This document shows, piece after piece, positions 5,098 through 64,000 of a stretch of DNA of 64,000 nt. A program made the position numbers and the translations under genes. Under the pieces are notes generated by a model. The model saw only the letters and a program-made list of their open reading frames with translations. It did not search any database and was not told where the DNA came from. Positions within the stretch are counted from its first letter, which is position 1; every line of letters starts with the position of its first letter. This stretch comes from Paragordius varius (lineage: Eukaryota; Animalia; Nematomorpha), in assembly GCA_964247055.1 (NCBI GenBank), contig OZ176054.1, positions 5,146,001 through 5,210,000 of the forward strand, written 5' to 3'.

Positions 5098-6278
5098 CCC
5101 TATGATCCCCTTTACTCTACAAAACAAATATATGAATTAAATATAATGGTAATGAATTAATTAAAAAAGAAATAATATTTACCTGTAAAATTCATAACAC
5201 ATTTTAGTGTGGTAGAGATAATAAAATTTATAAATATTTAATGGTATTTCTATCTATCTTTTGATTCGCGCGCCATAATCGCATTTTTTCGATCACATCA
5301 ATTTGCATGCACATGGCACAATATGTGTAAAAATATTTTTTCAAAATTATTGTATAAAATTTAAATTTTATTCATATATCATATTCCGAACAAAGTTATC
5401 ATAAAAGGTATATTTGCATTTTGACTATTTTTAATTCCACACTCACACTTGACATTATGTATGTTTTTTAGTTTATAATATTTTGTACAATTTTTTTAAA
5501 AATGGCGTTTAGTTATTTTGAATAGTAAACTATTGTTTTATATGTGAAACTAAATCACATTATATAGTAAGTACACATATATATAATTGAAAATCTGTGA
5601 CAACGACATTTATAATTTTAATAAAAATAATATAATATTAATTTTTTTGGTGTTTAAAATATGACATATTGTGTTATACCAACCAGAGACAGAGATTAGA
5701 TTAATTTACCCGGTTAATATTAAATGCTAACAAATTGATATATAAAACATGATTGAATTACGAAAAAATTTCATTTTAAAATATGAGATCTCTATATCTA
5801 TTTATCTAAACTTATTTCCCATTTTCAAGTGTACGTTTTTATTCTACTACTTATCTGTATACTTATACTTATTAGTAATACCTCTTTTCTATTTTAATCC
5901 TTATAATACCTGTTTAGAAGAAAAAGAATTTCATAGGATGATTAACATAACAATTATATTTTTCTAAAAAAGTTCAGAAAAAGTTTATAAATTACAAAAA
6001 ATATATAATAACATATATACATATACCACGCGTTGTTTAAAATTGAATTTTTATGTTTCTATTAGCAAAACATATTACTGGTATATCAAATTTCGTTTTT
6101 TTTCACCTAACTATTTATACAACAAATCAATTTACCATCTAATACAGTTTATTTTTCATTTCGCTTTAGAAATCGTTTCGCCTAAAAGTTTGCATCGCAT
6201 CGCAACGCATCCCATACATATAACGTTTTCATTTGAATGATTTCCTGAGACTTTTTGTATTCTGCGGAAAAGAAAATC

Positions 6279-9200: not shown

Positions 9201-12200
9201 TTTAAAACTGATAATTTGCAATTTGATTAATATGTTTTTTTTAATATTTATTTATCCTCTTTGGTTAAATTTGTACATGAAATTGGAATAAAACAACTCT
9301 AAATAAATAATATTGAAACGGTACTTGGAAGTATGATGACATTGTTTTAACATTAGTAAAAATATAGAATATTGGTTTTCAGTTCTAGGGAGGTATCTTA
9401 GGCCAGAAATAATTTAAAGTTAAAAAATAAAAAATATATTATCGTATTGGGAATTGTCTTTTTTTATTGTTGTACATCTTGCAACATATTGGATACCTAT
9501 GGTTATTACACTTAATGTAATTATCCTCAATTTTTGTTGATAAATATAACTATAAATTTTAAAATTAAGTCCAATTACATAGGCTGTATTGAACGAATTT
9601 AGAAATTGCTTGGGAGGAAAACGTTTATTTTCATTAATATTCCCAAATTTATATTACATCTTTATATTAATACATAGGGTATTCGAGAAGACAATAATTT
9701 TTGTGCCACGATTAAACCCAACCCAAGGATTGAAGGGAAAACACCTATTGTAGCTAATGCGGTTTATGAAAAGACCAATCCTTCATACATCATAAATGGT
9801 ATGAATGTTGGAAATTCTGCTGGCCGTACAATCATATTTGCCGCCACATCGATTGGTACAATTGAAAAGGTAGGATATCTTTGCTATAATAAGAATAATT
9901 AAAAGTTGAAAAAAGTTTTTCTTTAAGATTTTGCCAAAAATTACTGGTATATATTTTTGTCAAAATTTGCACTAGATTGTGATTGAAAACGGGATTGGAC
10001 AACCTTTGGGGAGCCTATTGGTAGATGGTGAACAACCTACATTGAAAAAAGATGTGTTATTAGATGCTTCCCAATCCTATTTGTATACCATGTCAAATAG
10101 AAAAGTATGTTTGTTTTCCGAATATTATCTTGTTTTAAATATATATTTTTACTCTTATTTAAATTATTTTTTGAAAATTTATTAAATTTGCAAAACAAAC
10201 AAAGATCAATGCTAGATTAAAACAGAAACAAAAAAAATGTGACGACATAAAAAAGAGAACCAACCACAAACCATCTTTTATCATCATTAACACAATTTTA
10301 TTATTACATATTAACAAATATATATTGAATGATGATTTATTAGATTTACAAGGTTAAAGTTGCGCAATGTGCCAATTTGACGTCGTGTATGACCTGTCTC
10401 TCCGCTGATCCCTATTGTGGATGGTGTACACAGGAAAATAAGTATTATTCCTATATTATCAAAATTTAAAATTAGAATTTATCAACTTGATTTTAATACC
10501 GCTTTTTTGTCTTTGCAATTCAAGATGTACACTAAGATCGGAATGTCAAAGATCCAATACACTAAGTAAATGGTTACCATATCGATCGAGTCAATGTACG
10601 TATATTAACAGTATACGACCCACGAAAGCTGGATTAACCCAAAATTTAAGGGTATATTAACACTTAAAACTAAAATTGGCTTTCAAAAAATATATGAACA
10701 TATGTTCTCGTAAATTATTTATATTAAAAATAATTATTTATTTTTTTGGTTAGGTGGATATTAACATATCAAATCTACCGGGACCAATAACTCAAACTTC
10801 CAAATATTTTTGTGTTTTCGGATCTCCTTCTTCGGACAAATATATTCGAGCCATACCCACGTTATTCGGTTTAAACTGCCAATTACCCGAATTCAGTGAT
10901 CGACCAATCATTGATGGATCCGGTACTACTTTTATTCATGATATATAAATTATTTTTTAATACAAAATTTATCATACAACAATTTTATTATACACATAGG
11001 TTTTGAAACGGTGGATCTACACATCGTTATGCAAAGTGATAGAGGTGTTAAACAGTTTTTGACAAAACACAATTTCACATTTTACGATTGCTCTCAACAT
11101 AAAACTTGTAGGGAATGTACAAACCCTGATTGGGATTGTCTTTGGAGTCACACTGACAATAAATGTAGTCATCCCGAAGAAGCTGTCACGCAATTCCTAA
11201 AGGTAACCTGCAAAAAAATTAATTTGAAATATCATAATTTATTAAGATTAATAGCTTAAAACACTCATATCAATATAAATAATTAGGGAACAGTGAATAA
11301 CCGTGAAAAATGCCCACGCCTTGATTACGATTTTCAACCAAACATTTTGATTCCCCACAAAGTTGCAACAGAGATTAGTATAAAAGCTATCAATATACCA
11401 ACGCATGAAAGAAGCGGTTTGCAAAATAAATACACCTGCCTTATAGCTTATGGCAACACTACGAAAACTGTAATGGCCCATGTTGATTTCTCCCAAAACC
11501 TTATAACGTGTCAAGCCAATAAAGTACATAATTGATTTAAACGAAACTTTTAAACGGAAGAAAATACAGTAAAAATTGTAATTAGTAAACATAAAACATA
11601 ATGAAAAAAAAATTTAAGAAAACCATTCCGTTTTCATCCTTATTTTTTTCCTACAGAGAATAATTAAATACAATTATAATATATATCATTGATAGTGTTA
11701 CCAATTTACATCCCTATTTCATACTTTCCATTTCAAAACAATGAATTATATTTATATGAATGAAGTTTAAAAAGGTACTGCAGTCTTTTGAAGAAAAAAA
11801 ATTTCCCATATGTTTAGTACGAGTATGAAGGAAAAATAGCGCATATGAAGGGACAACTAACCGTATTTTGGAACGATGTAGTTTACATTGATTCCACTCC
11901 TATAATCCTTTACAAGTGTTCGAGTTTGGCAGATGATTGTACACTCTGTGCAAATTTGGATCCCATCTACAGTTGCGATTGGTGTCCTATGAATCCGTTT
12001 GTCTCTGTGTGTCGGCACTCACATCAATGTTCTTTGATGACAAAACTGCATGGTGGTCAAGACCCCCTTAGTAAGACATTTGGATCTAAATTTCATCATG
12101 ATTATGATAATAATCAAATGAACCGAGCAAACAATGTACGAAAAGGGAAAAATGTTGACCTATTGATTGATCCAAACAGGTCTGTTCAGTCCACTTGCCC

Positions 12201-15200
12201 TAGTCCAAGAATATTATCGGTTTGCCATTTTCTTCTTGATAAGTTTAATGGAATTTCATCAATTTGTATTTTCAATGTATTAGAGTCAATAAGTTATATT
12301 TTTGTGTCCAGATTACGCCAAAATTCGGGCCAAAAGAAGGTGGTACCGTTATCACTATAAAGGGCCATGATTTAGTCCAAAATGTTAGGAATGAATTTGA
12401 AATTTATATCGGGCAAAGTCCTTGTATGATTGAAAATGTGGAATTATCCAAACAGTAAGTTTTTTATTAAATTCATTTATTATAACATTTGAAAAGAGAA
12501 CATATATGCCATATTCAGATTTTTTATTTGGTTTTTAAAAACAATATTTACACTTATCAAACATTAATGAATTATATTTCTAATAAATTGTTAGAGAACT
12601 TAATTTATATTAAAAAAATGTTGCCATTCATTACCCTTTTATCTTAACAATTTTTCTGCAGAATTACATGTAAGACAACGTACAGTACTCAAACGGGCGC
12701 TTTACCCATCACTATAAAAAGTTGGTATTTCGGTCGCATTGTTTCAAACTATACGATTCATCAAAATTTATTTTCATTCTTGGTATATATTTTATTTTTT
12801 AATTGAATAAATTTATTTGAACCTAACTCTCCTAAAAATTATTATACTCTTAAAATTTTTTTGTAACATTAATCCTTAATAAATGTATAATAATAGCACA
12901 CCGAAGTAAACGGCATTTATCCAGTGAAGGGACCTATGTCAGGAGGCACTATCATACAAATCAAAGGGAAAAATTTAAACATTGGACTGCGAAGAAAAAT
13001 TTTTTTGGATTACATTCCATGCCAAATTTTAGATGAGTAAGTGCGCTAAATTAGTTTGAATAAACCCGTTTTTGACATATTTTTAATTTTTTAATATTTT
13101 ATAGAAATGTTCAAGGGTCAAATACAAACATACCATTTAAAAACGGTTCCGTTACCATATTTCCACGAGATAATTTGCGTTGTGTAACGCAATCTGTTAC
13201 ATCTGCCCCCTTTTATATTCGCAACCTTAAAGTTGAGTTGGATGGATTTGAAACATCGATACCCATAAACTATAGTTATATGCCTGATCCTATAATTGAA
13301 AGCATATCCCCCTTAAATACTTATCAAAGGTTGGTAGTTGCAAATTTTAGTAAATGAATAATTATTGATTCTAATAAAGAGACTATTTGTTAAGTAATTA
13401 TTATTTAATAATTGTTTTAGTGGAGGCACTCAAATAAAAATCCATGGATCCTCTTTCGACATCGTACAAGATGTGTATATATTCGTAAAAATAGTGCTTC
13501 CAGACAGTGAACTTATATCTAAACAGGTAAGATCTACTCTAGTTTAGTAAATCAATCGATTTTTTGAGTGTTCAAATTTTTATCTTTAATGATTTTTTTG
13601 CTTTAGGGATGTGAAATTAAAAATTCGACGTTCATGATGTGTTTGTCCCCATCGATACCATTCGAGTTGGGGAATCAAAGCATTTCTATACCCTATGGCA
13701 TTTACATGGATAATATTGATACTTTTATGGTATATTTTTCAATTACTAAACTAATTCGGTTGATCATTTATTTATGCAAACCTGTTTTTTTGCATAAATT
13801 GTAGCCATGGTCTTAGAATATAGATGCGGTTTTTCATTAACTCTACTTTTAATAATACCTTTAAGATATTTTTTTGTTTCAATAATCCTAATCCAAAAAT
13901 AATGTAAGATTTTATCCATATGCTATGTGTGCATTTAATAAAAATTAAATTTCCAGAATCTGACACACCGATTGTGGGCTAAGGAAGACCATATGATATA
14001 TCATCCGGATCCTAAGATATTCCCCTTCGCAGAACATAATCACGAAAAAGTTTACAATGGAGATCCACTCATAATTGAGGGCTTAAACATGAAATGGTTG
14101 AATGACTTGAAAATTTATGTGGCAGGTAATGAATGTTTTATAACGGTCATCTCGAATTCCCATGTTTTATGTAATCCACCCAGTCTTACCCAACTTGACA
14201 ACGGTCTTCAACTCATTCCGAACGAAATAAAACGTTCACCCAGTTCTCCCGCCCACTCCAACAATGACAAAATAAATGTTTTCCCTGTAGAGGTAATACA
14301 GCAATACAATTGACTGCAATTAATTTTTCTTAAATAGCTAAAAATTTCGCAATATATTTTATCTTCCGTTTTTCCATATCGATACAGGTTTTGGTTTTGG
14401 GTCAAAGATTAAACATTGGTTGGTTAAGGTATGAAGATTCGAATAATGTGTCCTACCTATTACATACTACTCCCATATCCCCCAAACATTATTCCAAAAC
14501 GACGTTTATCCTCCTAGCCATAAGTGGAGCCATTTTTGTTTTCATTAGTTTTCTCATCACGTTCATCTGCATACAAAAGAGCAGATTGGTTGAACGCGAA
14601 TTCAAACGTATGCAAATACAAATGGAAACGTTGGAGAGTAATGTCCGATCTGAATGTAAAATAGGTAAGTTTAACTAACACCCATGTTTTATTAAAGTCT
14701 ATTTGCTGTTTAATAAGTATCAGGGGTGTCCAAAACGCGGCCAGCGAAAATTTTGGTAAAAATTAAACAAATGCGAAATTTTATAATTTGCTCCATTTTG
14801 AACAATTTTTTTTGAAGAAGTCTTTCTAATTAAAAACGAATTAAAAATATTGGAGAAATGAATATTATTTCGTATTTACATTTTTTACAGTCATATTTTT
14901 TGCGTTCGATCGGATTTTTTTAGTCAAAAATTCGGGTAGCGAAGCCATTTGTTTTGGATACCGCCAGGTTTTTATGTTGCTCAATGTTTATTTTGGTTAT
15001 AAACGCCTTTGAATTGGTGAATTGAGCTAAAAGAGCAAATATGTTTTTTTTCTCTATTAACCACATAAAAACCCATACCCAAATGATGTGATTTTTCCCT
15101 AATCATTTAATAATAGCGTTCGCTGAACTCCAAACCGATATAAATGATATGGAAAATGATTTTTGTCAAACCGGCATTCCATACGTTGACCAAAAAGTCT

Positions 15201-18200
15201 ATATAAGCAAAATGTTTTTCCCGCACTTGGAGTTGTGTTATTCAACAATGTATTTCCACACTCCTCAATATTTGACAGAGGTAACTTATCGAAAATATGA
15301 GATCTTTATGATTTAAGGACTTTTTATATAAAAACATAATTATATAATAATTGTGTAGAAACATCAAAATCCATATTCTACATGCGCAAGTTTGTTGGAT
15401 ACCCTATCAAATACCATGCAAAGGCCCTTTAACAAACCACTTCTCCACGCTGAAGCTAATGAAAACGTTATAAACACGCATTCGACTTTAACTAAAAACA
15501 ATACTAAGCTACTGATAGATCTTAGCTCTTCTTCCATAGGATCCTCTTCGAATCAATCCAATCATTGCCAACAAAATAAAAATCAACCCAATATGATGGA
15601 AGCGCTTATTAATGATAATAATGGTAAATCACCCCTTCCTCCCCTTATCAATGACCCGTTTACCATGATTAATAGAAGTCAACCAAACTATCAAACAATA
15701 AATCATTATGGGTTAAACGATGAAACCAATACATTAAATAGTCAACCGTATGCAAGTAATCACGTAAATTATGGAATCCATAAATTTGAATGCCTTCTGC
15801 TCGACAAAACATTTTTGCTTTGTATGGTTCAGGCGCTTGAAAATCAGCCCAGTTTTACCGTCAAACACAAATCTTATTTTGCTTCTCTCCTTAGCGTTGC
15901 ATTACTCAATCACATGGAGTATATGGCGGAAGTGGTTTTAATTCTGCTAGATAAACTCATCAATTCACATTTCGTTCAACGGAATGTCACACCTCACATA
16001 TGTTTACGACAAACCGAGTCTATTGCTGAAAAAATGCTATCAAACCTTTTAGCTATCGTCATGTATCCTTATGTCAAAGTAATTGACTGAAATTTAATTA
16101 TCCATAAATATTTATTGTTTGACGAAAATTTTAAACATTAAATGTTATAATCTTTAGAAACATACCGGAACATCGCTATTTTACCTTTTCAAAGCACTAA
16201 AGTTTCAAATAGGTAAAGGACCTATTGATGCAGTTACCCATGAGGCCAGATATGCCTTATCAGATGATTATCTTTTAGCCGATAAAGTGGATTATAAAAT
16301 TTTGGTAAGGGTATAGTTTTATTTTTGATTACAATTTTAATCCCGCAAAATATGCTATGGCATAATGAATAATCGTTGTTCTATTTTCAAAATTTATAGT
16401 CAGTAAATGTCATATATTACGAAATTGGCACATCCAATCCACAAAACATAATATGTAAAATCAATGATTGCGACACAATTAATCAAGTCAAAGAAAAAAT
16501 CTTAGATACCATCTACAAAAATATGCCATACAGTTTCAGACCATCAAAGAACTTGTTTGAAATTGGTAATTTGTCTAATCAAAATTTTAATTTCAAGATG
16601 CATATTAATCCTCATTAATCAATAAGTTCAATAACTTTTTTTTTCATTTAGTTTGGAGTCATGGACGTTATGGACCCATAATTCTTGAAGATGAGGACTC
16701 TACGTCGGAAATTACAGAGGCTGGATCGACCGGAAAATTGCTTCGTTTAAACACTATAAAACATTACCGTATAAATGAAGGGACAACCCTATATTTCAGA
16801 CCTATTATTCATGATGTCCATCATAATTATGAAACGATAAAGAGTAAAAGATATATGACAACAAATCCACCCAATACCAATTTTTTGTATGATGATGGAT
16901 TGGCATCAATATTAAGTTCTAGCGTAATGCCTCCTGAAATAGAGTTTATACAAAGGGCACAACTGCAACATATCAATTCAAGGAGAACAATGGATAAACA
17001 TGCGATTATGGATTATACGCCTGAAAGTGGACGAAAAAATATGTTTGGTAATATGAATAGTCCGGGGACTAATAAATTATTCTCGAGTCTTAAAAAGCAT
17101 GTTCAGTATCCTTCATTCAAAAAGAAGGTATTATATGGTGGCCACAATGTTGCGGATGAATCATTACAATTTAATCAACAAAGCATGAATCGGAACAAGA
17201 GTAAAAAATCTCAATTTTTCACTTCACTTGACCCAGAAAAGATTATGAAATGGCATTTGGTATATTTTTTAAATTTATATATAAAACGTAAAAAACTCCC
17301 TTGGAGTAATACATTTTGTTAATTTTTATCTATTATATGAATGATATCTAATTTTGGTGTTTTTATTATTAAAGGTATATCCCAAGGGCGGAGAACCAAA
17401 TAAATCCTGGGATTGTCCAAAGATTATTGCTGAAGTTTTTCTCACTAGACTTTTGTCAACTAAGGTAACAATATAATTTATATGTTTTAAAAAATATTTC
17501 AATATAAATTATTTAAATTTACATTAAAATATAATGTATGCAGGGAACTGTACAAAAATTTGTGGATGATTTGTTTACATCCGTATTTAGCCTTGAAAAC
17601 GATTTACCTCCATTTGTTAAATATCTCTTTGATTTTTTGGATAATCAAGCACACCAATATTTTCCTAATGATCCTAACCTATCCCATACTTGGAAAAATA
17701 ATTGGTATATTATTGAAAAATTGTCGTTTTAAAACGTATTTTTTCCCCTAAAAATTACATTGTTTAAATGGCTAATTTGGATAAAAAATATTCATTTATA
17801 GTCTACCGCTAAGGTTTTGGATTAATGTCATAAAAAATCCTGATTTCATTTTTGATGTTTGGAAAACGCCTACAATTGATTCATCCCTTTCGGTAATTGC
17901 TCAAACGTTCATGGATTCTTGTTCTTTGTCTGAGCACAAACTTGGAAAGGTATGCTACATTCAATAAAATTTCACTTTTTTAGAAAAACACAAATTTTTT
18001 GCATTTTCATAATTTATACAATTTGTATATGTTTGATCATATAGGATTCACCATCCAACAAATTGCTGTATGCCAAAGATATTCCCAATTATAAAAAAAT
18101 GCTAGTGAGATTTTACGACGATCTCCAAAATTTACCCAAAGTTAGCGATCTCAGACTCAAAGAATCCCTAAAAGAGAATGAGGTTATATTCATATATACC

Positions 18201-19268
18201 ATTTACACTTCAAATTCACTCATGAACAATTCAGATTCACCCTCGAACAATTCGAATTCACTCTAAAATAAATTATGTTTCTTAAGATTAAAAATTGCTA
18301 TATTTTTTGTTAAAAAATATAATTTTGTTTAAAATTAAAATAATACTGGAAAAATAATAAACTAAGCCATAAAGATATAGGAGTATTATTAGCCTGAAAA
18401 AACATGATTTATTGGGGTGAATTTGACAAGGGTGAATTAGAATTGTTGATATACCATAAAAATATTTTCTTTAATTAGTGTACAATGATAATTACTAACA
18501 TATGAATAACACTCTTTATATGATATCAAATAGAACTTTGCCAACAGCGACGTAAATAAACCATTGGTTTACAATCACATAATGTCATATATGCTAAAGT
18601 ATCGTACAGAAATTGTGGAATATCTCGATTCCAACCAGGCCAGTTCATCGAAAAATCTCCCCCATTCTTTCTACACATGCTGTGAAATGTTTGGTAACCC
18701 AAATCCATCAAATCAAATGGATTGTTTGTATGGAGAAGCAGTTAATAAAAATGCATCTAAAAACAGTAAGCTACACATAAAAAATGAGTTTACGGAAGAG
18801 GATTCCATAAAACTTTTACCCAATGTTGTCAATTCAATCCTTCCTACACCCATGATATATCAACCTTATCATATGGTGGAAAGCAATAATAATAATTTAC
18901 CAGTCAACAATAATGATAATGTGCCTGGTAATTTGTTGTATGATACCATCGAAAAATTTAGTTACATCATGACTAATCGGGGTTATACTCTTTTACCCTC
19001 AATAAATGCCAATAGCAATGCTAGTAATGCTATATCTAATAATACCACGCATTTTAAAAATGATTCTTACAATCATTTACCCGCTTTATATCGTGGTAAC
19101 GGAGAAGTTAATCAACAACCATATGGGTTAACTGGAGACTTAACCACAAAAAGAGTACGAGAGTTACAGCAATATAGACAAAATCCTCAGTTTATGAGGA
19201 TGAATAATACTGATAACAAACAATTTATACATGTTTCAACTTATCCGCCTAGACCTGAGATTTTTTAA
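6279..19268 (+). CDS. PlexB: Plexin, invertebrate Plexin-B-like (Sema-PSI-IPT ectodomain, TM helix, split RasGAP-like domain with RBD); 27 exons
   Basis: Hand-spliced with GT-AG and consistent phases: 6279-7637, 9678-9869, 9976-10104, 10344-10441, 10525-10651, 10754-10922, 11000-11202, 11287-11523, 11818-12219, 12312-12454, 12662-12782, 12897-13036, 13105-13329, 13421-13526, 13607-13729, 13957-14292, 14388-14664, 15117-15280, 15359-16078, 16158-16304, 16400-16565, 16652-17259, 17375-17464, 17544-17704, 17802-17949, 18045-18182, 18534-19268. Signal peptide [17 protein letters not shown]; PSI motif [14 protein letters not shown]; IPT starts such as [16 protein letters not shown] and [10 protein letters not shown]; [25 protein letters not shown]; plexin cytoplasmic motifs [101 protein letters not shown]. 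As I recall the family, the juxtamembrane [23 protein letters not shown] resembles insect PlexB more than PlexA. Confidence 0.95.
14721..14967. mobile_element. hAT (Charlie-like) MITE relic in plexin intron 17
   Basis: Starts CAGGGGTGTCCAA, the same terminus as 26224 and 56207. Only a degenerate right end (ttggataccgccagg) is visible near 14953-14967. Confidence 0.45.
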
Positions 19269-27312: not shown

Positions 27313-28623
27313 TTAGTTTAATTTTTTCAACTCCGAAGTCCATACTTGTTGAGGCCAACCGGTTCGAGTCTTAAAACGAACTTTTGCGGACTTTTCTGAA
27401 GCATACTTCATGGGAAAGTTTGACATTGATTGGTTATTATTATTGATTGACATCATTTCCCTCTTTTATTATATATATAAAAAGTATATTTTGAGGGATT
27501 ATTTTACTAAAGCATTAATTATTATATAATAATAATTGGTACAGATGGTACCGAATGGAATGAAACAAGAAATGCAAAGTTCACATGTAAAATTAGTAAA
27601 AACAGATAAATTTTATTTAATTGACAAGATGATAGAACATAACTCAAGAAGATAAAAAGAAAATACCGCCAATTCCTCATCTTTACGCTTTCTTTCTTCT
27701 CGATTCAATCTTCGGTTCGTTAAGTCAGCTTTAAAATACTTTCTAAACGAATCATCAGAATAATTAGGGGAGTCTTTATTTGGTTCAATAAAAGTATTTT
27801 CATAATTTTGATTGGTGATAACTATTGGTATGGATAATAAATCCATCAAATAAGCAATGTAACTTGTGGCAAGTTTCAACGTTTTAATCTTAGATAGTTT
27901 GGTGTCAGCAGGCACATTCGGGATCCGATCTCTGAGATCAGAAAATGCGCTATTTATGCTTTGAGTTCGTCGCCTTTCTTTCTTATTTGCTGATACTCTC
28001 CGTTTAACAACATACACTACGGGTGTAGAAACTGTTGTATTATTATTATTATCATTATTATAGGGATAGTTTAGAGTAGGTGTCGAGTAAGTGGGAATCT
28101 CAGAATGCGGCATATTTATCCCAGCATTCTCGCTGTTTAAAAGGCAATAAGTTATTTTTTTGGATTCGAGTTTATCATAACGGGAATCGGATTCAATATT
28201 ATTACAGCAATAATAATCGATTAAATAATTGCCATTCAAATTTTCACCGTTAAAGCTATTATTTATAGGGGTTACATCATTGTATTCGATATTATTCCAT
28301 AAACTATTTTGATTGTTGCATGCGAAATTTACAGTAGAATATTGCTGGCCAATTTCATTTGGTAATTTCATGGATTTCGGTTCTCCTTCCAGAAAAGATT
28401 CATTATAAATTATTTTTTTCTGTGATGGTATTATTAGGTCATTTTGATGTTTGAATGATAAATCATAATAGGATTCAGTCGAAAGTGTGGTTTCAAGATT
28501 AAACAGACCATTGATAGCTATTCTCTCCTCTGTTAAAGGGTTTTTATTTCTTTGACTCTGGGAAAGGTAACAGGTATACTCATTGTCGATACTACTATAA
28601 TAATTATGTTTGACATAAGACAT
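27313..28623 (-). CDS. Hand: Hand (heart and neural crest derivatives expressed) bHLH transcription factor; 2 exons
   Basis: Exon 1 is 28623-27667. It starts at ATG MSYVKH (the track ORF starts at an upstream TTG) and contains the b[60 protein letters not shown], then [13 protein letters not shown], with GT at 27666. Exon 2, about 27462-27313, is missing from the ORF track and encodes the Hand C-terminal signature [19 protein letters not shown]. The exon 2 acceptor (aag at 27463-27465) is the least certain boundary. Confidence 0.95.
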
Positions 28624-28731
28624 ATGAACAATTTGATGGAAAAGGGAATTAGGCAAATGAAAATATTAACTTTTTTTATAAATATAAAAAAATATCTGTC
28701 TGAAAATATGAAATAGTTATGTTAAACAGAC

Positions 28732-37393: not shown

Positions 37394-40300
37394 TCATTTT
37401 ATAAAATTAACATTTGTTTTGCAATCAAAAAGTTCGTCCTGTTCGTCCGCGGGTGTTAGTTTAAAATTTAAACTTTTGATAAATTCCTTACAAGTGTGTA
37501 TGTCAGGAAATGCTAATTCACTCACCAAAAAAGATAAATCTATTTTGGATTGTTTATATCTATAATGAATGTATAATATTAATAAACATATATAATCAGT
37601 TCCAAAAAAATCATAAAAATAAATGTATATCATTATTATCCGGCCAATCTGTATGATTACACATATAAAATACCGACACATAAAAAGCAACTGTTTAATA
37701 ACATTCTTTCACATCCGATGTATAAATAATTTCGCGCTTGAAATTCTAATACAGGCTATACAAAGAATTAAACCCCTCTTACTTTTTTACCTGTTCGCGT
37801 TTATGAATTTTCCATTCAATCAAAATAATTAAAAAATGATAAAAATTCTAAAATAGATAGCACAATTGTTTAAACTTACGCTTTTATAATCTTTTCAAGT
37901 GCAAGTTTACGTTCCCGGACAATAAACCAATCTATTAAATATGCTGACATACGGAGCGCACCTTTAGAATATAAATTAAAAAATTTGTGATAATTTCCCT
38001 GGCTCCAAGCGCAATACAAATGAACTACAAATTTTATCATTGGATGATTTTTTATGGCGATATCTAGGTTCCCAAGAGTATTGTTCAAATCTAATATTTA
38101 ATAATGTTGGCTTTATTTAAGATAAATTAATATAATTATCAAAAATAAATGATTTTTACCTAATATACCTATCTTTGATTTTAAAGTTTTTAGTTAAAAC
38201 ATTACAAAAATTTTATTTTGAGACCTAAGGATATTAAGAGAAAATTTTTATATAATGGTGCGAATTATATAAATATTTCATATCAATCAACTCGGGGCAA
38301 GCGAGTGTTAATAACTTAATAAATAGGGAGAGATATAGAATTTATAAATATTAAAGGAACGGGTTATTTTGGGGATTGTATATGAATAAAACGATTCCAG
38401 CAGTAAACATATATTGCGCAGATATGATAAAATAGTTGACATAATAATTAACAACTTATGTATTATTTTACCAATATTCAGTCATTACAATTTTAGTACT
38501 CTTTAAAAAAATTTATTTACAAAACATTCACTCAAATCAAATAAATAGCAAGCAATGTTAAAAGTATATACCATTTGAACTATTGGTAAACATATGGTAT
38601 ATGATGTAATATGCAATAAATTCCTCCTTAAACTTGGAGGGTTGGCCTTCGTCATAAAGGGCCTGAAGTTGTGTTTGACACTGATTAAACTCTTCACGAT
38701 CGGCCATTTCCAATGCAATCCTACAATGAGTTTCATATACCGCAACAGTCAAACTATCCCGTATGTTTTGAACCTGCGTACGAATGTGAATCATTTATAT
38801 AGGGTCAAATATTTTAATTAATTTTACCAGTTAAGAAAATAGATTATAAAAGCCTAAACATTAACTTATGTATTTTATATTAAGTATAAAGGCTTAATTT
38901 GTAATACCATCAAATCTTGGCGGATGGATTTCAATTGTTCACATGCATAATGGTAATTGTGTTCGGTGCACCATTTATTTTGAACATGAAGTAAAGATTT
39001 ATATAATATTACTGCTGGTCTTATGATTTCTGGATCCGGAGCCTAAAATCATAAAATATATATTTATTTTAAATATCGCTTATAAAACAAATAAAATAAG
39101 CATAATCTCACTGAAGTCAAACGGAGATAAGGTCTTTCAATGTTTGTTGAAGTACCAATCACATGTATCTTGGTCCAATCTATAGATGAGTCTAATGAAT
39201 CCTCTTGAAGCTAAAATATTGATATATTTATATTATATATGTAATGTTGGGAAATTGTATATTTGGATTAACATGTGTTAAACGCCAATACTTATTTATA
39301 CCAATAATATCATTCAATCATTAATTATAATCAATTTAATCAAAATAAAGTTACGAAAAAATAATATGCAATAAACATAAAGGGTGGATAAATTTTGCGT
39401 AAATAATATACTCCCATTACTCCAAATTTGGAAAGGAAAGGGTCATCAACATTCTTGCGTGCAATTAACTCTTGTTCTTCATTTAGCTTAAACCTGTTTG
39501 AACGCTTTTCAAGCAATTCCTTATTTGAGGATATTTGACCTTGCAATTTACTGTACAAATAAAAATGAATATAATGAATTAATTAATTATTTGATTCAAA
39601 AAAATGATTAAAAAATTACAATGCTTCCCGGGAAGTTAAACCATCTTTTCGGGCTAAATATATATATTCAAAAATTATTATATTTCAATATAATTAAATC
39701 TTTAAAGGTTAGTAATAAAAAGTAAATTTTGTGAAAACCTTCGGCTAAATTGTTGGTTAGAGTTGATATTAATGTGGATGATAATGATTCCGTGTTGATC
39801 TCCAGTCCCAATCTTATATAAATTAAATAAATAAATTATTTGCGATCTAAAATTAAATTTCATAAGTAGACCATTTTTGAATGTCATTATATAATAATAT
39901 AATATTTATCAATAACAATTAGCTTATTTATAACATTTAAAAGAAAAAAAACTTAAAGTAGAAATTTTTCAAATAAGCCTAGAGCAGATTGTATAATCAA
40001 TATATTAATTATTTTACTTGTTTATCTTTTGAAGTTTGCGATTTTTCTTGGGGAAATTTGGCTTTTTATCAATATTTCCAGGGGGAGTTCCATTCGAATA
40101 ATCCCACCTATAAGCTTTACCTATAATAATTAATTAAAATTATATTTCATTTTAAGAAAAAAATAAATATGTTTTAGGGTGAAACCTTTGTGATGAGGTG
40201 ATGCTAAGTGATTTCTTCGTTTATTGTTAATAACAGGACTTCGGCTATTGGATCGGGAAATCGATTTAGAAGCGGCAGACCCTGAACGACTATAATTACA

Positions 40301-50367: not shown

Positions 50368-53218
50368 GAGGGTAAGTGAGAGGAATGGCAAACCACCCTC
50401 GTTTATTACTGCCAAAAAATAGTTTTACTATATGAACTTAACGCGACTTTTCAAAGTTGGATGCTGGAACGTACGTTCCTTAACAGAAACCAAACAGGTG
50501 ATAATTGAAAAGGAAATGGAAAGATTGAACTTAGATATACTGGGTCTAACGGAAACCAATCAAAAAGGTAGCGCGAAAGTACAAAACGAAAATTATACAT
50601 TGTTAAGATCGGGAAGAGATGACCAGAAATCAGAAGGCGTTGCAGTATTAATAAAAAACAAATTAAATAAAAGTCTCATTAGTTATACACCATATACACC
50701 CAGAATCATGAGTATAAGGCTGAATGCCAAGCCTCTTAAATTTACATACATAGTAGTCTATGCTCCTACGTCAAACGCTCCCAAAGAAGACATAGAGGAT
50801 TTTTATGCAACGTTGCAAATAGATTTGGATGAAACGAAGAAAGGAGATATGATTATCATAGGAGGGGATTGGAACAGCAAAGTTGGTAGAGGTAGAGTAG
50901 ATCAAATAGTTGGCCCATATGGATTGGGAGAACGAAACGAGGCCGGGGAAGCACTGATCAATTTTTGTCAAGAAAATGAGATGATGATAACCAACACAAT
51001 AGGAGGTACACATGGACCTCTCCATGTGGTAAATATAAGAACTAAATTGATTACATAATATACTCAAAAATGGAAAAGCTCTATAATCGCCAAAACAAGC
51101 AAAAGCAGCGATTGCTCTAGCGATAATGAGCTTCTAGTAATCAAAATCAAACTTAAAATAATTAAAAATAAGGTTAAACAGATATACAGATATGACACTC
51201 GGAACATTCCAAATAGTTATAGAACAGAAACAAAAGATAGATTAGAAAGATTGGACAGTGAATGTAGCTCAGAACAATTATGGGGAACGATAAAAAATGT
51301 TGTTAATGAAGTGGCAAAAGAAAAAATGCAGAGAGTAAAGAGGAAAGATAACAAATGGATATCAGAGAAGAGTTTAGAGATAGCAGAAAAGAGGAGAAAA
51401 GCTAAATAAAGAGGTGGTAATAAAATGGTAAAATTATATAACAAAGATTCTTAACGACAAACAAGGAAGGATTACGAAGATTTTCTTAATAAACAATGTC
51501 TGGAAGTGGAATTAAATAACAAAAAGGGATTAATGCAACCAATGTTCCAGAAACTGAAGCAAATGACTCATAAACCTTTTATATCATCCCAAAAGATTAA
51601 AAAAAGAATGGCACCATATTGTGCAAACAAACAGAAGTACAAGATGGAAGGAATATACCCGAAAACTCTATCAGGCTCCTCAAACAAAAGTGTTGCAATT
51701 AAAAGAAGAAGAACGTGATCCAGATATACTAAGAGAGGAGGTTGTATTAGCCTTAAAACAAATTCCTAACAACAAAGCGATGGGATTAGACAATATCCCA
51801 ATAGAGTTCATAAAAGCTATTCCTTTAGAAACGTTACACAAGTTATGTCAAAAGGTGTGGGAAACATGTGAGTGGCCAAACGACTGGACATCATCTGTAT
51901 ATCTCCCAATATACAAAAAAGGAGATGTACTACAGTGCGAGAACTATCGGAACATATCTCTTATTAGCCACGCTAGTAAGGTCTTACTAAAAGTAATACA
52001 AAACAGGATGCACAGTATCATATAGACAGAAATACCAGAAAATCAAGCCGGATTTATGAAGGGAAAAAGCACAAGAGACCATATGTCAAACATGAGAAGG
52101 ATAATGGAAACATCAAAAGAGTTCCAGAAAGAATTATACATGTGTTTTATTGATTACAGACAAGCCTTCGATTCAATTAACTCTGACTCCTTGTGGGAAA
52201 CATTAAAGTTAGTAGGGGTATCGTCTCACTTAATAAGATTGATTAGCTCTCTCTATGTAAAACAAAGAGCGATTATTAGAACATCAGCGGGGGACACAGA
52301 CGAAATACCTATCTTGAAAGGATTCACAAGGGTGTTGCTTATCCCCTTATCTGTTCAATATGTGCACAGAAATTATAATAGTTGGATGGTAAAAATATTG
52401 GAGTAAGAATAGGAGGGAGAACAATCAATAATTTAAGGTTTGCAGACGATACCACTCTTATAGCTGAAAGTGCAAATGATTTGAAGGAATTGATTGAAGT
52501 GATTCGAAAGGAAAGTTTGAGTTATGGTCTTAAGCTTAATCCTAACAAAACCTAAATATTATGTACAGGAAAAGAGCCTACAATTATTATAGAAGGAGTA
52601 GAAATAGAAATAGTTAAACAGTTAACGTTTTTGGGCGCAATAATTTCAGAGGATGGGACTTCAACTCCTGACATCAGAAAGAGAATAGGATTGGGTAGAG
52701 AAGCGATGACCAAATTAATAAAGATTTGGAAAAACAAAAGCATAGGAGTTGAAACCAAAAAAAGATTACTCTACTGTTTCGTTCTACCGGTCACCACATA
52801 TGGATGTGAGAGTTGGACTCTCAGAAAAAGGGTCAAAGAAAGGCTCATGGCTTTTGAAAGGAGCTGCTGGCGTAGGATGCTAGGATACACCTGGAAGGAT
52901 AAAATTAAGAATGGAAATCTAACTTCAGAAATAAAACCTAAAACAAACATCCTGGAGATAATTCTAAAAAGAAAGTTAACATATTTTGGTCATGTCATGC
53001 GATCGAATTCTCTGGAGAAAGATACAATGTTTGGGAAGGTAGAAGGGCAAAGGAAACGAGGCCGACCACCGATGAGGTGGTTGGATACGATAAAAGAAGA
53101 GACCAAAATGACATTGAAAGAGCTCAATATAGCGGTTAAAGATAGAAAAAAATGGAAAAAAATAGTTAAAACTATATCCAAAAAGTCGTTTGCGACTTAG
53201 GAAAAACCAACCAACCAA
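50368..53218 (+). mobile_element. Near-full-length decayed RTE-clade LINE (APE endonuclease + reverse transcriptase pseudogene)
   Basis: Endonuclease FKVGCWNVRSL..DILGLTET..YAPT..GGDWNSKVG (50432-51058). RT motifs WPNDW..PIYKKGD..CENYRNISLISHASKVLLK, DYRQAFDS and FADDTTLIAES (about 52440). C-terminus GKVEGQRKRGRPPMRWLDTI is typical of RTE. (CCAA)3 tail at 53207-53218. Multiple stops and frameshifts. Confidence 0.92.
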
Positions 53219-56554: not shown

Positions 56555-56842
56555 AATTCCTGCTGAACCAAAAGCTTGTTTGTAAACGATAAAACACATG
56601 AATTCTTTCTGGAACTCTCTAGATGTTTCCATTATTCCTCTCATGTTGAATATATGGTCTCTACTTTTTCCTTTCATAAATCGCGGCTGATTTTCTCTTT
56701 CTGACTGTATAATACCCAGCATGTTTTGTATTTTTAGCATGACCCTACTAGTGTGGCCAATAAAAGAAGCTATGTTTCGGTAGTTTTCGCACTGGAGTAC
56801 ATCACCTTTTATATTGGGAAATATCAGTCCTTTGGCCACTCA
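56555..56842 (-). mobile_element. RTE LINE RT fragment, same family as 50368-53218
   Basis: The minus strand encodes KGDVLQCENYRNI..GHTSRVMLK...FMKGKSRDHIFNMRGIMETSREFQKE..CFIVYKQAF, homologous to about 51880-52180. Confidence 0.88.
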
Positions 56843-57021: not shown

Positions 57022-60000
57022 ATCTACTAACAAAGTATTCAAATGAAATGACGAACATAAATAGTCAAATCGCACGAAGTACATTTGCAAACTCCAAACG
57101 CACAGATCGAGCAGAAATGGGAAAATTTCAAAAATTGCTGTTTCAACGGCTAACAATGCTAGAAAAATTTGTTCAAATGGGCAAAAATTATCAACATGCG
57201 CATAAATTTATGAATTACACAGAAAGAAAAATATTTAGTTTACTCATGAAAGAATTGGAATACCCCTTGTTCAAAAACATATCGTTTAGGTAAGAAACCA
57301 AAAGAATTGGTAATTTTATTTATAATTTGCTGAAATATATAAAAAAATATGGTAAATCCTAAAAATTTCAGTATAAAAATTTGTTTCCAATAATATTCAT
57401 TTAATATCAATGGATATTTATTTTTAACAAACATTAAATAATATTAAATAACGAATTTTCTGCCTAGTCTTTTTAGTGAATTTAATATCGACAGAGTTTA
57501 GAAGAAATTTAATAAACATATCATTATCATAATCCCCAAAAAATAAAATTAATTGTAAAACAAATTTCCATAACTGGTAAATTCTACCAAAAAATATTCA
57601 TTTATCATACAATAAAAACGCTTCACTTTAATGGATAAAATTTAAATGATGATAAAAAAGTTAATTCATACTGTTATTATCTAAAATTTAAAAATGGCAT
57701 TTTGTACATTGCAAAGTTGTAGAGCCGTTTCGTTAAATTAAAATCTTAGAATAAATTAGTGCAAACGGAAATCTACAACTCACTTTATTGTTTTCAATCA
57801 TATATCAATTGATTTAAATTAGACGAAAATTAATATTGATTTAATATTGGGCTTGATAAATACTAGAGTAAATTTTAGGAACATCAGAGGATTGGATTTA
57901 TAAAATATTATTAAATTATATTAGGACTTTCAAGGGTCATAGCGTCCAACTTTTTCGAAATTACATTGGTGTAAAGATAAATGATTCTAAATTGAGCCCT
58001 ACTCCTATAACTATACAACCTTCGACAGAAATGAAATATTTCCTGAATACTTTTAACATTTTGACCACTAACAATAATGGAAAAAATAATATTGAAAACA
58101 ATTTATATCATGCATACATCAATAAGATGCGAACAAAAAGAGTATCGGAAAAAGCCCCGATTTTATTGGACCAAACTTACAAAATGTTACAATCTTACAA
58201 AGAGTGTTGTTTAGCCAAGAGTATATTTATCATTAATAATAATATAAATTGATAATAATAAAACAATAAAAATCATAAGGCAACGCTAAAATTTAACTAA
58301 TCATTAAAAAATTATAAAAATAACTAATAATGTCATGAAATAAAAAAATTGTTGCTTTTGCTTGAAAAAATGTTGTCTTTGGTTGAAAAAATGCGTTTGT
58401 TTAAAAAATGTTGTCTTTGTTAAAAAAATGTTGTGTTTGCTTGAAAAAATGTTGCGTTTGATTGAAAAAATGTGTTTGGTTGAAAAATATAAAATGGTAT
58501 GTATTGTAAATTGAAATCATCTTTCCCATAAATAAATCATTTCTATAGACTGCGGAATATCATCAATTGGATATAGAGCAAATAATTGAATTGTTATGGG
58601 ACATTTATTATAAAAAATAATCCAGGTAAAATATGCATAAAAATAAAATTATCAACACCTTAATGTTAATTTCATCTGACTGGGTTAAATTTACACATAT
58701 ATCTATTAATACTTAACGGAAAATCTTTATTTTTGTATTTGATAAATATAATGTATACAACAACCTATTTATAAAACTTATTTCAACAATTTTTTATCAA
58801 AGCTTTAATTTGTACGAGGGATGATTCAACTTAGTTTTATAACCGATTATTATGTATATTTGTCTTATGTATTAAGGAAGAACAGTTATTTCGTGGGAAA
58901 AATATTAAAATGAATCCAAAGTTAAGGATTTATAAAAATGTTAGGTTTTTTTAAAGTAAGCTTTCCGAAATATAAAATTAAATGTGGGAAAAACGCGCCC
59001 ACACCTATTAAATCGTCATTAATATAAATTAATGACAAATTGTTAGAAAAACCGCAATAATTCATAAATTAATTTTTATGAATTTGTTTAAAAAAGTCAA
59101 AATAGCCATTTCGATGCATAAACGGTTTCTAGACTTCTGGATGTTGTTATAGAATTTAAAATTTCCTTGATCCAATGACTTAATATTTTTATTATATGTG
59201 AAAATTAAACAAAAATTTGCAAAGAATAAACCCTAAAATATTAACACAAATTATATGTATTAAATATTTTTTAGATGATGAAACGCAATCCTCGAATTAT
59301 TTGGCAACTTTAAAGCACAAATTATCCGAAGTTCAAAAATTTAAACAAAAAATTCTAACAAATACCAAAAAAATATTAAATTATACTAGGGCGGAGAACG
59401 TTCCAATATACCTTACAAGTAATTTATAGTAATTTAGGAGATAATACTAATAAATATATATATTATATATAAGCGGGACAATTTATTTCATAACCTATGA
59501 ATTAAAAATTTTGTTTTATATTTCACGATTTAAATTAGGATCTGTATGGGGGGATGATTGGACCGGTATTATACCCTATAATGTAAACTATGGCGAGCTT
59601 GTGGATAAGCAAATTTCGACAAAAAAATGGAACACAAGGACATTAATGGAAAAAGCTGACAAATATTTAATTTCTATCGGTTTTCCGCCCTTACCACAAT
59701 CATTCTGGGACGCATCGAATATCGAAACGTTTGAAAAGTGTAATTTACAAATCAAAGACAATTTGGCCTTCAATTTCCTACATGGTGAAGTTAGGTATTG
59801 ATACGCAGACAAAACGTAAAAATAAAGGCAAATATTTTTTTCTAAAAGACAACCAACCATCTTTTTAAATATAAATCAATGTTTAAAAATTAAAAATATG
59901 AAGAGTATTAGATCAGTAAGATAATCATATTTTACAATTGTAATTAAATAATTTATATGGGATAAATTAAGTTTTAAAAAAGTATGGTTGTCTTTTAAAA

Positions 60001-61906
60001 AAAAATATTTGTATTTATATTTTTACGTTTTGTTCGTATAATTTTAATTCTTACTGTAAATATATATATTATATATTGACGTTGCGAACCTTTTATTATT
60101 ATACTCTTTTTACCGATTTCAAATTATAATATCTTGTATTTTTAATCGGAGCTAACCCGCTGTTGGTGAGAGTTGGTAGCAAAGTTTTGCTTTCAATTGT
60201 TAACGGTTAACACTAAATTTGCATTTGCGAGGAACAATCTCTTTGATGTTCCAATCTTTTAAAAATCCTCCCTAACTAATATTCCAAAGTTGCCCGTCCA
60301 GAACAATGATATCAAAGATGATAAAAAACATAAAAAAAGAAAAATTTCTCCATTTATTTTTTCGTTATTTATTCTTAAATTTATTCATTCATATAGAAAC
60401 AAATGTATTAAAAATATGTCCCATATAGATATTATTAATATGAAAAGTTATAACAAAATAAGTTGGACTAAGCTTTCAATTGTGTCCATCCTATTATTTT
60501 GTACATAAATCAGTGGTTGATGAAGTCTACTCATTTATCACAAATATAAAAACTACCAAAACAAATTTGACTTTTTTAAGCTTCGCCTTCCCCTGCTTTT
60601 ATAGTTTATGAGTATTTAAAAAAATAGTCTTGTTTTCAATTATCCATATCCAATTATTTGCTTTAGAATCAACTTTTGTAATGATCCAACAATTGATTCC
60701 TGGTTTGATATATACCATCATCTGGGCCATATACATTACTTTTTGGCTACGAAAAATTTGACGTATCCATTGTGTAAATCGGCTCACCCGATGATAGAGG
60801 AAGCGGTGGGAAATATGTTGGCACTTTCAGCCCTACACCCTAAAAATTTGTATGATATGGGCCTGTTCAACACATATAAAGGTAAAAAATATTATATTTA
60901 ATAACAAATTACAAATTTTATTAATTTCTGATACATAGTCGTAATGGGAAGAATAAAATATGATACAAAAGCTAGAGCGATATTGGTCATTTTGGAGTTA
61001 ATGGCTAAAAGGGTTTCAAAGTTACATTAAATTTTTGTTAACATGTTATTAGGTGCTATACTGGTTTGCTGGCTATTTTGCAAGTCTGTTTTGATTATCA
61101 TGCATACATTTACGATACTCCAAATTGTCATAGCCATCATCAGCTTTTTATTTACATTTTATTCTTTTAAATCTCCTGGTGAGATGCCTTTATGTTTGTA
61201 ACAATATAATTATTGGGTGACTAAATAATTTTTACAATTCAAAATTAATTTGATAATATTCAACGCGTATAATATTATAGATAAATATGAAGCATACTAT
61301 GCACATTATTTGGCTATGAGAGACATCCCCAAAATCATGTATTTATTAAACTTGATGGAATGGAGACACAATGTAACACATGACAATGTAACTGTTGAAG
61401 GTATGCAAAAGCATTGGGAGCAATTAATGCTCCATTCCTTAAATCTTGAAATAAATGTTCCGGATAGAGTTATTGGGCATGACGAACACTCTTCCATATA
61501 CTTGGAGAAGGCAGAAAGTGCGAATAATGAAATGAATGGTTATTTTGACTTGGGTCGTAATTACTATATAGTAAGAAATGCAAACATAGAAAATCATTTG
61601 TTACCAATTTTGCTAAAGTATCAAATGTTAGCGGCCAATTGTGACAAAAAATCATATCTTAAATCATGTTATAACATTCAGGAGATCAATGGATCACATA
61701 TAAGGTTTATGATAAAAATATGAGTGTAAAAAATATAATTATAAATAATTTATTTTCATTGTAATTTTTATAATCCATTTTTTATATACAGGAGAGTATT
61801 GCAATTAGGCAAACGCATTGGATTACATCAAGCACTAAAAATGCTGACGGGATCAAGCGATATAGATTTTAGCACCATTTTATCATACCTTGATAGAGAT
61901 GATTGA
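57022..61906 (+). CDS. Angiotensin-converting-enzyme-like (peptidase M2 family) protein, predicted catalytically inactive; 5' end uncertain
   Basis: Well-supported exons: 59275-59419 (NVPIYL), 59540-59798 (SVWGDDW..KADKYLISIGFPPLPQSFWDAS..AFNF..VR), 60667-60881 (absent from the ORF track: INFCNDPTIDSWFDIYHHLGHIHYFL..AHPMIEEAVGNMLALSALHPKNLYDMGL), 61281-61704 (LAMRDIPKI..EWR..HW..YFD..LKYQM..C) and 61792-61906 (VLQLGK..ALKMLTG..IDFSTILSYL). These are collinear with the ACE core (LGDMW, FFTSL..PMP..FW, HHEMGH, GFHEAIG, ALS). Likely upstream exons are 57022-57289, 57925 to about 58222, 58549-58625 and possibly 56890-56960; these are less certain. Confidence 0.85.
58342..58487. repeat. ~20-22-bp minisatellite (aaaaaatgttgYStttgNttg), about 7 copies, in an ACE-like intron
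   Basis: Repeated aaaaaatgttg..tttg.ttg units read directly. Confidence 0.8.
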
Positions 61907-61947
61907 TTTATGATATGAGTTGTTACAAATTTTATATATAATTATCA

Positions 61948-63539
61948 TTAATTATTGGTTTTGGCAGCTCGAAATTCTGTCATAATTTGTACCGGTATCA
62001 AATTTTGTATCATATTTATACCATTTTCATCCTGTAAATAAGCAAATAAAATTCATGTACTGCTTTGCAATAAATGAATGATAAAATTGCGAAATGAATA
62101 ATTGAAAAATATGATAAATACATATTCCTGAGGAATATGGTGGCAAATTAAAATAAAATTTGATTTTGATTCTAAATATATTATATTTAAGTTTTATTTG
62201 GCCTCAAAATATAAGACGTAGTTAATTTTATCAATTAGACAATTGATACGTGCATCTACTAACTTTTAGTTTATAAAATTCAAAACGGTTAAAAATAATA
62301 TGCGCAATATAATTATTTATATAACAGTTCAAATAAAAACTCAATTCATAACATTCTTATTAATTGCTGTGAAAAGTATTATTACCTAATAGAATTATGG
62401 ACCATTTAATTGATTACTAAAGAAAAAAATGTAAATGTATGAAGCATGTAAGGTTTATTTTTTGCTTAATGCTTAATTTAAGGCAGAAAACAAAAAATAT
62501 ATACTTTATGTCCTTTTATCCATTACCAACTTAAAAACATATGCTTAATATATATGTGATACATTGATAAAAAATTATGACAAATAAAATACAAATATTA
62601 AAATTTATATGCGTAATGTTTTGAAAGGAGAAATCGATTAGACAAATTTTATAAATAAAAATATATGGTTATTTTATAGTTATATTACCGTGGTAAGATT
62701 AATGATTGAGTGATCTATAAATTCTCTCAAATGGGTACGCAAACCGGTTTCGTTACTGACTAAAAATTCTTCTCGGCATAGCATTAAGAAATCGTTAAAA
62801 ACAACTGAATTCTTTGGGGCTAACAAAAAGTATCAATAGAATCGTTAATAAATGATATTGCAATTATACTAGCTAAAAAACATGCTTAAATACGCGCTAT
62901 GTTTCTTATATACATGTATATAAAGTCCGCATTAACAAACAGGTAAAATGGTTAACAATTATTAATTTTGGTTAAATTAATTTTTAATAGTACATATAAT
63001 TTAAAAAAACATTTAGGACACGAAAAATGTCCCGAAAATGATCCATTGTTTTTTTGGTAATAATGGGTAAAAACAATTTTGCAAATCTTAAAGAGAGTCT
63101 TAAAAAATGTACGCTAAATCTTGTGTCTTATTATTAAAAATTTAAGTGGCCAAAGTTTAAACATATATACCTGTGGTGTCATCCGGATGTTCTAGCACCG
63201 CTTTTTGTTGCATAACATCTATAAACATGTCAAATATTTTTTTGGAATTTGCCGTTAAACTAGCATATATACGTTCAAGTGAAAGTAATTGTAACATAAA
63301 ATCATCCGTTTTTCCTTCCAAACTTGACGGGATCGAAGATAAGGAATCCGTAGCTAAAAAGAGTTGAGATAAAACATGATTGTTATTGATGTTAAAGTAT
63401 CGTTCAAGCGTTTGATTAACGTCAGTAGATTCATTTGCAATGCATATCAATTCATCTTGTTTAACAAATGGTATAAAGGTGGGCGTATGATGAAAAACCC
63501 AATTCCATTTATCCCATGAACAATCAAGTTCGTCCCACA
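61948..63539 (-). CDS. ORC2: Origin recognition complex subunit 2, last three exons (5' part outside the window or unresolved)
   Basis: Exon 63539-63171 (WDELDCSWDKWNWVFHHTPTFIPF...SLTANSKKIFDMFI), exon 62819-62689 (VFNDFLMLCREEFLVSNETGLRTHLREFIDHSII, matching the ORC2 motif CRE.FLV.S...LR..L.EF.DH) and exon 62031-61948 (DENGINMIQNLIP...*). Phases are consistent. Confidence 0.88.
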
Positions 63540-64000
63540 CTAGTGTATTTATATATATATATATATATATGATAGCCAAAAAAATTTAATCACAACTAGT
63601 TTAGTAAAAATTTTAACCAGATTAATTATATGTGAGCCTTGATAAAAAGATCGCCCCTATAAATTAGGGTAGAAAATAGTAAAAAATCAAAGTCAAAAAT
63701 ATCTTAAAAACAAGCACAGAAACAGCATAATAGCGGATTTTAGCAATTGTTAACAGCTGATTTAAGTATTGCATTCTTCCAGTATATATGCGATAGCGAT
63801 AGAAAAGATTGTTTTAATACTGAATACAAATCCTGTCTACATGACCTCTAATACAAATTAGGGTATTTTACCAAAAATTGTATAAAACTATATCATAAAT
63901 ACACACTTATTAAACATTGCACCAAATAAAAAAATATTTAAATAAGTATTTTTTTCACAGATAAAACCGACCGCAAAATTTGAAAAAGTTAAATAATAAT

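Follow-up and report, generated by a model that had tools for sequence, protein, structure and literature searches.

The window analysed here, a stretch of 64,000 nucleotides from the horsehair worm Paragordius varius, contains a predicted ACE-like gene whose product is probably an inactive relative of the M2 peptidases: catalysis would have been lost before the lineages of Gordionus and of the window gene separated, the ACE fold would have been kept, and the protein would act by binding.

The gene comprises seven exons between positions 57048 and 61906 of the plus strand, which join to 1692 nt in frame (563 codons, ending with TGA). All introns follow the GT-AG rule, 12 of the 12 splice sites being canonical, and the intron phases are consistent. 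The coding frame is free of stop codons in each exon; the other two frames hold 3–15 stops. Within the AT-rich window (about 23–34% G+C) the G+C content is 0.29–0.38 in the exons and 0.13–0.26 in the introns, and at the stop codon density of the introns 563 open codons would arise by chance with a probability of about 1e-21. Judged from its sequence the predicted seven-exon gene is intact. Its exons are given below, together with their similarity to the closest relative of the protein, P0012 (CAK9300244.1), an unnamed protein product of 561 aa from Gordionus sp. m RMFG-2023 (Nematomorpha).

57048..57289, plus strand: exon 1, with the ATG at 57048 and the donor GTAAGA at 57290; matches residues 1–80 of P0012 residue for residue (20 of 80 identical).
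57925..58220, plus strand: exon 2, coding for the very diverged N-terminal lid region; the AG and GT sites and the phase fit, and the end ..SYKECCLAK matches ..SYGYCCIKQ of P0012.
59275..59418, plus strand: exon 3, ending with ..NVPIYLT (..IPAHLLG in ACE); splice sites and phase 1 as in the Gordionus gene.
59539..59794, plus strand: exon 4, 256 nt; Peptidase_M2 match with 41.4 bits (E 9.6e-11); length and phase as in exon 4 of the Gordionus gene.
60667..60881, plus strand: exon 5, zinc-site helices; Pfam match with 54.2 bits; 34 of 63 residues identical to P0012, the best-conserved exon.
61281..61704, plus strand: exon 6, 140 stop-free codons; two Cys kept (61637–61669); tblastn match with P0012 (E 3e-15).
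61792..61906, plus strand: exon 7, with the TGA at 61904–61906; weak Pfam match at profile positions 528–561; 12 of 31 residues identical to P0012.

When the gene was searched one exon at a time, Pfam recognised exons 4, 5 and, weakly, 7, and none of exons 1, 2, 3, and 6. For exon 2 neither a Pfam nor a PDB match was found, and the same holds for exon 6 with Pfam and with PDB sequences. Exon 6 is recognisable only via the Gordionus orthologue, as ordinary ACEs barely detect it in tblastn; with P0012 as the query, tblastn also detects exons 4 and 7 in the window. The word search for exon 6 returned nothing, and that for P0012 returned only P0012 and no other indexed relative of the subfamily.

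The junction between exons 1 and 2 is uncertain. For the strong donor at 57290 the one compatible acceptor is at 57923-24, and this acceptor, which is in frame with the donor, skips ..EDWIYKILLNYI.., a stretch resembling the start of exon 2 of the orthologue. An alternative acceptor AG is situated at 57877-78, and the sequence behind it resembles the start of the Gordionus exon 2. Intron 1 has phase 2 in the window gene versus phase 1 in Gordionus. Going by the sequence, exon 2 may start either at 57925 or behind the acceptor at 57877-78.

The hydropathy maximum of exon 1 is 1.24, and by simple hydropathy only, with a further 5' exon being possible, a signal-peptide-like hydrophobic stretch was not found in this exon. 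A conserved upstream exon encoding a signal peptide was found neither for the window gene nor for the Gordionus orthologue, and a signal-peptide-like N-terminus is absent in both (57048–57289 in the window; 10001–10232 of the Gordionus locus L001). The apparent lack of a signal peptide would be odd for a protein of the ACE fold in which the disulfide cysteines are kept.

P0012 was identified by an exhaustive search of 1.84 billion representative sequences with exon 5, which yielded 146 hits. It is the best single-domain and full-length match of the exon (51% identical in the search); compared with the window protein the identity is about 35% overall and 54% in exon 5 (34 of 63). P0012 matches Peptidase_M2 (PF01401) with 241 bits over the profile positions 22–573. 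Its gene likewise consists of seven exons, introns 2–6 have the phases 1, 1, 2, 1, and 2 as in the window, and exon 4 has 256 nt in both genes. At the Gordionus locus, ORC2 is situated downstream of the ACE-like gene on the opposite strand, and the arrangement in the window is the same:

62680..63585, minus strand: last exons of ORC2 (62680–62826 and 63160–63585), with WHD_ORC2 (E 4.9e-15) and RecA-like_ORC2 (E 3.2e-5); synteny anchor.

Because both the seven-exon layout and the ORC2 neighbour are the same, we regard the window gene and the gene of P0012 as positional orthologues on the strength of sequence and gene order. The ACE-like gene and ORC2 lie tail to tail in the window. From the ACE-like stop codon to the last recognised coding exon of ORC2 there are about 770 bp (61906–62680); therefore the 3' ends of the two genes must be near each other or overlap.

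When the relatives were searched for HHXXH, a His at the position of the Glu was not found among the 146 exon 5 hits. Two proteins, P0088 and P0117, had appeared as HHMGH proteins owing to a gap artefact; both read a normal HHEMGH.

Several other features were recognised in the window. A non-LTR retrotransposon with Exo_endo_phos (E 1.3e-11) and RVT_1 pieces, which are spread over several broken frames, occupies 50423–53197 on the plus strand, 4 kb upstream of the ACE-like gene. An inverted reverse-transcriptase fragment of like kind (56555–56839, minus strand) precedes the start codon of the ACE-like gene by about 200 bp. From 6249 to 19265 the plus strand carries a large multi-exon plexin gene, with Plexin_cytopl (E 7.6e-30) at 15359–16087. 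Its first large exon (6249–7667, 473 residues) has no Pfam match at E 0.001, which is why the Sema domain may be very diverged. The long open exon at 27616–28665 (minus strand) encodes a bHLH domain (HLH, E 3.5e-18), whose basic-helix wording, compared by eye, resembles that of Hand-type factors. Exons of the SAC3/GANP family are present at 37397–39582 (minus strand), with a weak Pfam match (E 8.8e-5) at 37879–38097.

The preliminary description had claimed that an exon missed by the ORF track encodes HHLGH in place of HEXXH. The motif is indeed present in the predicted exon 5, for which codons, splice sites, and the Pfam and PDB alignments agree. The coding frame starts at 60668 within a stretch that is open from 60620 to 60898 (plus strand), and the splice sites flanking the exon are an AG acceptor (60665-66) and a GT donor (60882-83). 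The stop-free piece of 71 residues encoded by it, INFCNDPTIDSWFDIYHHLGHIHYF...PMIEEAVGN...NTYK, matches Peptidase_M2 with 54.2 bits (E 1.4e-14; cut-off 23 bits). Together with the 41.4 bits of exon 4, this bears out the assignment to the M2 family. In phmmer alignments with PDB chains the piece aligns without gaps to the N and the C domain of human ACE, pairing HHLGH with HHEMGH and EEAVG with HEAIG. By index count on chain 1o86_A the residues of the zinc site can be numbered as follows:

60716..60730, plus strand: HHLGH (CAT CAT CTG GGC CAT; HEMGH in human ACE), comprising H383, E384 replaced by His (CAT, 60719–60721), and H387; identical in a contig of run X5.
60797..60814, plus strand: EEAVGN, the second Glu being the third zinc ligand (equivalent of E411, 60800–60802); Asn replaces D415.

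EEAVG is situated 24 residues past the last His of HHLGH. That the third zinc ligand is retained in IEEAVG, as had been proposed, agrees with the gapless alignment, which puts the Glu at E411. The ligand positions H383, H387, and E411 are present in the window gene and invariant in an alignment of 25 proteins (P0012 and 24 ACE homologues); for the EEAVGN segment the invariant residues are E350 and G353 of P0012. Seven of the eight residues invariant in this alignment are kept in the window protein, including the triad; the sole exception is a Phe-to-Ile exchange before EEAVG.

The CAT codon at 60719–60721, for which GAA or GAG would have been the canonical reading, stands. A contig of run X5, which derives from a separate study, shows no difference over 60707–60929, and contigs of runs X2 and X7, from other organisms, show 1 and 2 differences, respectively, in 200–280 nt over the motif, at positions outside those listed. 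Run X2 represents a close relative with a divergence of roughly 1–3%. Over 583 nt of intron 4 its contigs differ from the window by 20 substitutions, and over the 281 nt of 60573–60853, which cover most of exon 5, by a single one. In exons 1 and 2 there are at least eight differences among those listed, five of them non-synonymous and three synonymous. Among the X2 differences listed, this hints at the zinc-site exon as the most constrained part of the gene and at a weakly constrained N-terminal part.

Introns 2 and 4 contain very high-copy repeats (in 58201–58600 and 59801–60200), for which the summed contig depth in X2 is 1e5–1e6 versus a few hundred nearby. Many joints of opposite strands were found in X2 contigs around 59927–59999. 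These repeats look like palindromic MITE-like elements.

The remaining residues of the active site were mapped by an alignment of P0012 with human ACE and by pairwise alignments of the exons with P0012; D415 was mapped directly on human ACE. A MAFFT alignment in which each of the seven exons was entered as a fragment alongside full-length ACEs misplaced the diverged exons and was discarded in favour of the pairwise alignments. The segment of ACE that contains the substrate-binding and transition-state residues is replaced as the preliminary description had it:

61556..61597, plus strand: RNYYIVRNANIENH, in which the equivalents of K511, H513, Y520, R522, and Y523 are N, Y, I, N, and H.

In P0012 the same five positions read N, F, I, K, and Y. 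The two orthologues are alike in the degenerate segment from K511 to Y520, and they differ in that P0012 has a Tyr at Y523, a Glu at D415 (Asn in the window protein), and the motif HQIGH (Gln codon CAA) instead of HHLGH (CAT). In exon 4 the equivalent of C352 (KC, 59736–59741) is followed by an Asn in place of H353, as aligned by hand with the conserved Cys as anchor. The window protein retains the cysteines that form two disulfides in ACE (KC...INFC and NC...SC). Both orthologues therefore keep the zinc triad (equivalents of H383, H387, and E411) and the disulfide cysteines of the fold, and both are without the general-base Glu (E384 in the HEXXH of ACE) and without the residues for the substrate carboxylate and the transition state.

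From this comparison the active site is broadly dismantled, with the metal ligands and the core retained, and not inactivated at a single residue. The ACE-like protein of the window is very probably not a peptidase. The earlier proposal of a pseudo-peptidase holds as far as the exchange of Glu for His and the intact triad are concerned; seven further equivalents of pocket residues are replaced. The suggestion that the His represents a different route to inactivation has to be dropped: the pocket is dismantled at many positions (equivalents of H353, D415, K511, H513, Y520, R522, and Y523), and exon 6 is very diverged as well.

The fold was predicted for the Gordionus orthologue. P0012 was modelled by AlphaFold with an alignment of 25 sequences, giving a pLDDT of 76.9 and a pTM of 0.79; residues 168–555 are confident and residues 69–167 are not. 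Foldseek comparison of the model with ACE, ACE2, and Drosophila AnCE gave TM values of 0.72–0.79. The predicted structure of P0012 is the two-lobed, all-helical ACE fold.

A quick maximum likelihood tree was calculated from 26 single-domain homologues. The end branch of P0012 has a length of 5.19 changes per site as compared with a median of 1.08. P0012 pairs with P0044 (SH-aLRT 89, to be read with a long-branch warning), a Gordionus protein annotated as ACE-like in which HELGH, HESIGD, and KFH are still present. This pairing and the long branch are consistent with a gene duplication in the phylum, after which catalysis was lost and evolution accelerated. Because the Gordionus orthologue reads HQIGH, the Glu was probably lost before the Gordionus and window lineages split. 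The codons GAA (Glu), CAA (Gln), and CAT (His) form a series of single base changes; the order E to Q to H would be inferred by parsimony from two tips and one orthologue.

Taken together, the most probable history would start with the duplication of an active ACE-like gene, of which a paralogue with HELGH remains in Gordionus. One copy would have lost catalysis before the two genera diverged, and would afterwards have evolved about five times faster. At the site of the general base the sequence would have drifted from Glu (GAA) via Gln (CAA, kept in Gordionus) to His (CAT, in the window gene). The two-lobed ACE fold would have been preserved, a structural zinc may be part of it, and the protein would act by binding and not by cleaving peptides.

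The closest known counterpart is mammalian ACE3, which reads HQMGH, has intact ligands and a replaced D415, and is taken as inactive (PMC1925091). Like the window protein, ACE3 of mouse, rat, cow, and dog is an M2 homologue that has lost only the general-base Glu of HEXXH and retains the two His and the Glu ligand further downstream; the equivalent of D415 is changed, and the wording EEAVG is common to both. The ACE3-like proteins P0009 and P0031 are among the best matches of exon 5. Unlike the window protein, ACE3 has Gln and not His at the site, its pocket is largely preserved, and it retains a signal peptide and, in most cases, a membrane anchor. The tree places the ACE3-like P0009 with the canonical ACEs, whereas P0012 groups with the Gordionus paralogue P0044, again with the long-branch caveat. 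Since ACE3 is placed with the canonical ACEs and the horsehair-worm lineage apart from them, the loss of the Glu appears to be independent of ACE3; with the same caveat, common descent with the ACE3 group is not supported by the tree.

The exact HHLGH of the window protein is found in ADAM29, and ADAM7 reads HQLGH; both are metzincin pseudopeptidases (PMC11266112). These are M12 metzincins with a His as third ligand and a Met-turn, and unlike the M2 proteins considered here they share no homology with the window protein beyond the motif helix. Non-peptidase homologues of ACE do exist among invertebrates, as the preliminary description had stated, namely Drosophila Ance-2, -3, -4, and -5 and C. 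elegans ACN-1 (PMC1325048). Like the window protein, they are invertebrate members of the ACE family without essential active-site residues, and C. elegans belongs to the sister phylum of Nematomorpha. However, ACN-1 is described as being without the metallopeptidase active site, and in Ance-3 a Gln stands in place of the third ligand; the window protein, by contrast, keeps all three ligands. Among nematodes the only match found was a weak one, to the Trichuris protein P0082, with 28% identity in exon 5 and a degenerate motif. In the literature we found no paper tying Nematomorpha to ACE biology and none describing HHXXH in an ACE.

We considered four alternatives to an inactive binding protein. 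First, the new His could be a selected fourth zinc ligand, a His3Glu arrangement closing the metal site so that the catalytic zinc becomes purely structural. In favour of this, both orthologues preserve the triad of H, H, and E along with the flanking G, I, and Y despite fast evolution, exon 5 is the best-conserved exon in comparison with both Gordionus and run X2, and from gluzincin geometry the residue just after the first ligand should be near the metal in the HEXXH helix. Against this role, the Gordionus orthologue has a Gln at the site, so that the His is not conserved, and none of the 146 relatives has a His there. Furthermore, an Asn occupies the position of D415, the residue by which the first His ligand is oriented in ACE (PMC1925091). 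We therefore consider a selected fourth ligand unlikely. An extended form of this reading, in which the zinc site would be the one selection-guarded part of a dismantled ACE and the His would complete a four-ligand centre in a possibly non-secreted protein, is quite unlikely. If true, it would mean that horsehair worms have a binding or sensing function that depends on the metal, is specific to them, and is new among M2 proteins.

Second, the gene could be an unprocessed, decaying pseudogene whose open frame is a remnant and whose protein is not made. The extreme divergence of exons 1–3 and 6, the ratio of non-synonymous to synonymous changes of 5:3 in exons 1 and 2 among the X2 differences listed, the retrotransposon fragment at 56555–56839 (minus strand), and the signal peptide that is not seen would be in line with decay. 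Nevertheless, 563 codons are open at the chance level given above, the twelve splice sites are all canonical, the G+C content of the exons is clearly higher than that of the introns, and the orthologue in another genus, at about 35% identity, is also intact with the same phases of introns 2–6. In view of the open frame, the splice sites, and the intact orthologue we rejected this very doubtful reading.

Third, the protein could still be an active hydrolase, neo-functionalised for a new substrate, with the His as general base. In line with this, the metal triad is intact, and a His can serve as general base in some other zinc hydrolases. But every residue for the substrate C-terminus and the transition state is replaced, and the replacements are not the same in the two orthologues. 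Moreover, the Gln of the Gordionus protein cannot act as a base, and an exchange of Glu for Gln abolishes activity in ACE and in thimet oligopeptidase (PMC1925091), which makes a remaining hydrolase highly improbable. Fourth, an assembly or sequencing error with a true codon GAA or GAG is negligible as an explanation, as CAT is two bases away from either codon and the contigs of X5, X2, and X7 agree with the window to the extent described above.

An inactive M2 relative that binds rather than cleaves thus remains the probable reading of the gene. A link to the biology of parasitism would be speculative, and a secreted effector would fit poorly with a protein that apparently has no signal peptide. 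Inactive relatives of ACE are already known, and the horsehair-worm gene adds one more: an independent, phylum-specific case of an ACE pseudo-enzyme from Nematomorpha, which does not open a new mechanism. The pair of HQIGH in Gordionus and HHLGH in the window gene can be regarded as a small natural experiment in which the Glu is gone, the site drifts, and the metal ligands stay; ADAM7, ADAM29, and ACE3 show the same pattern.
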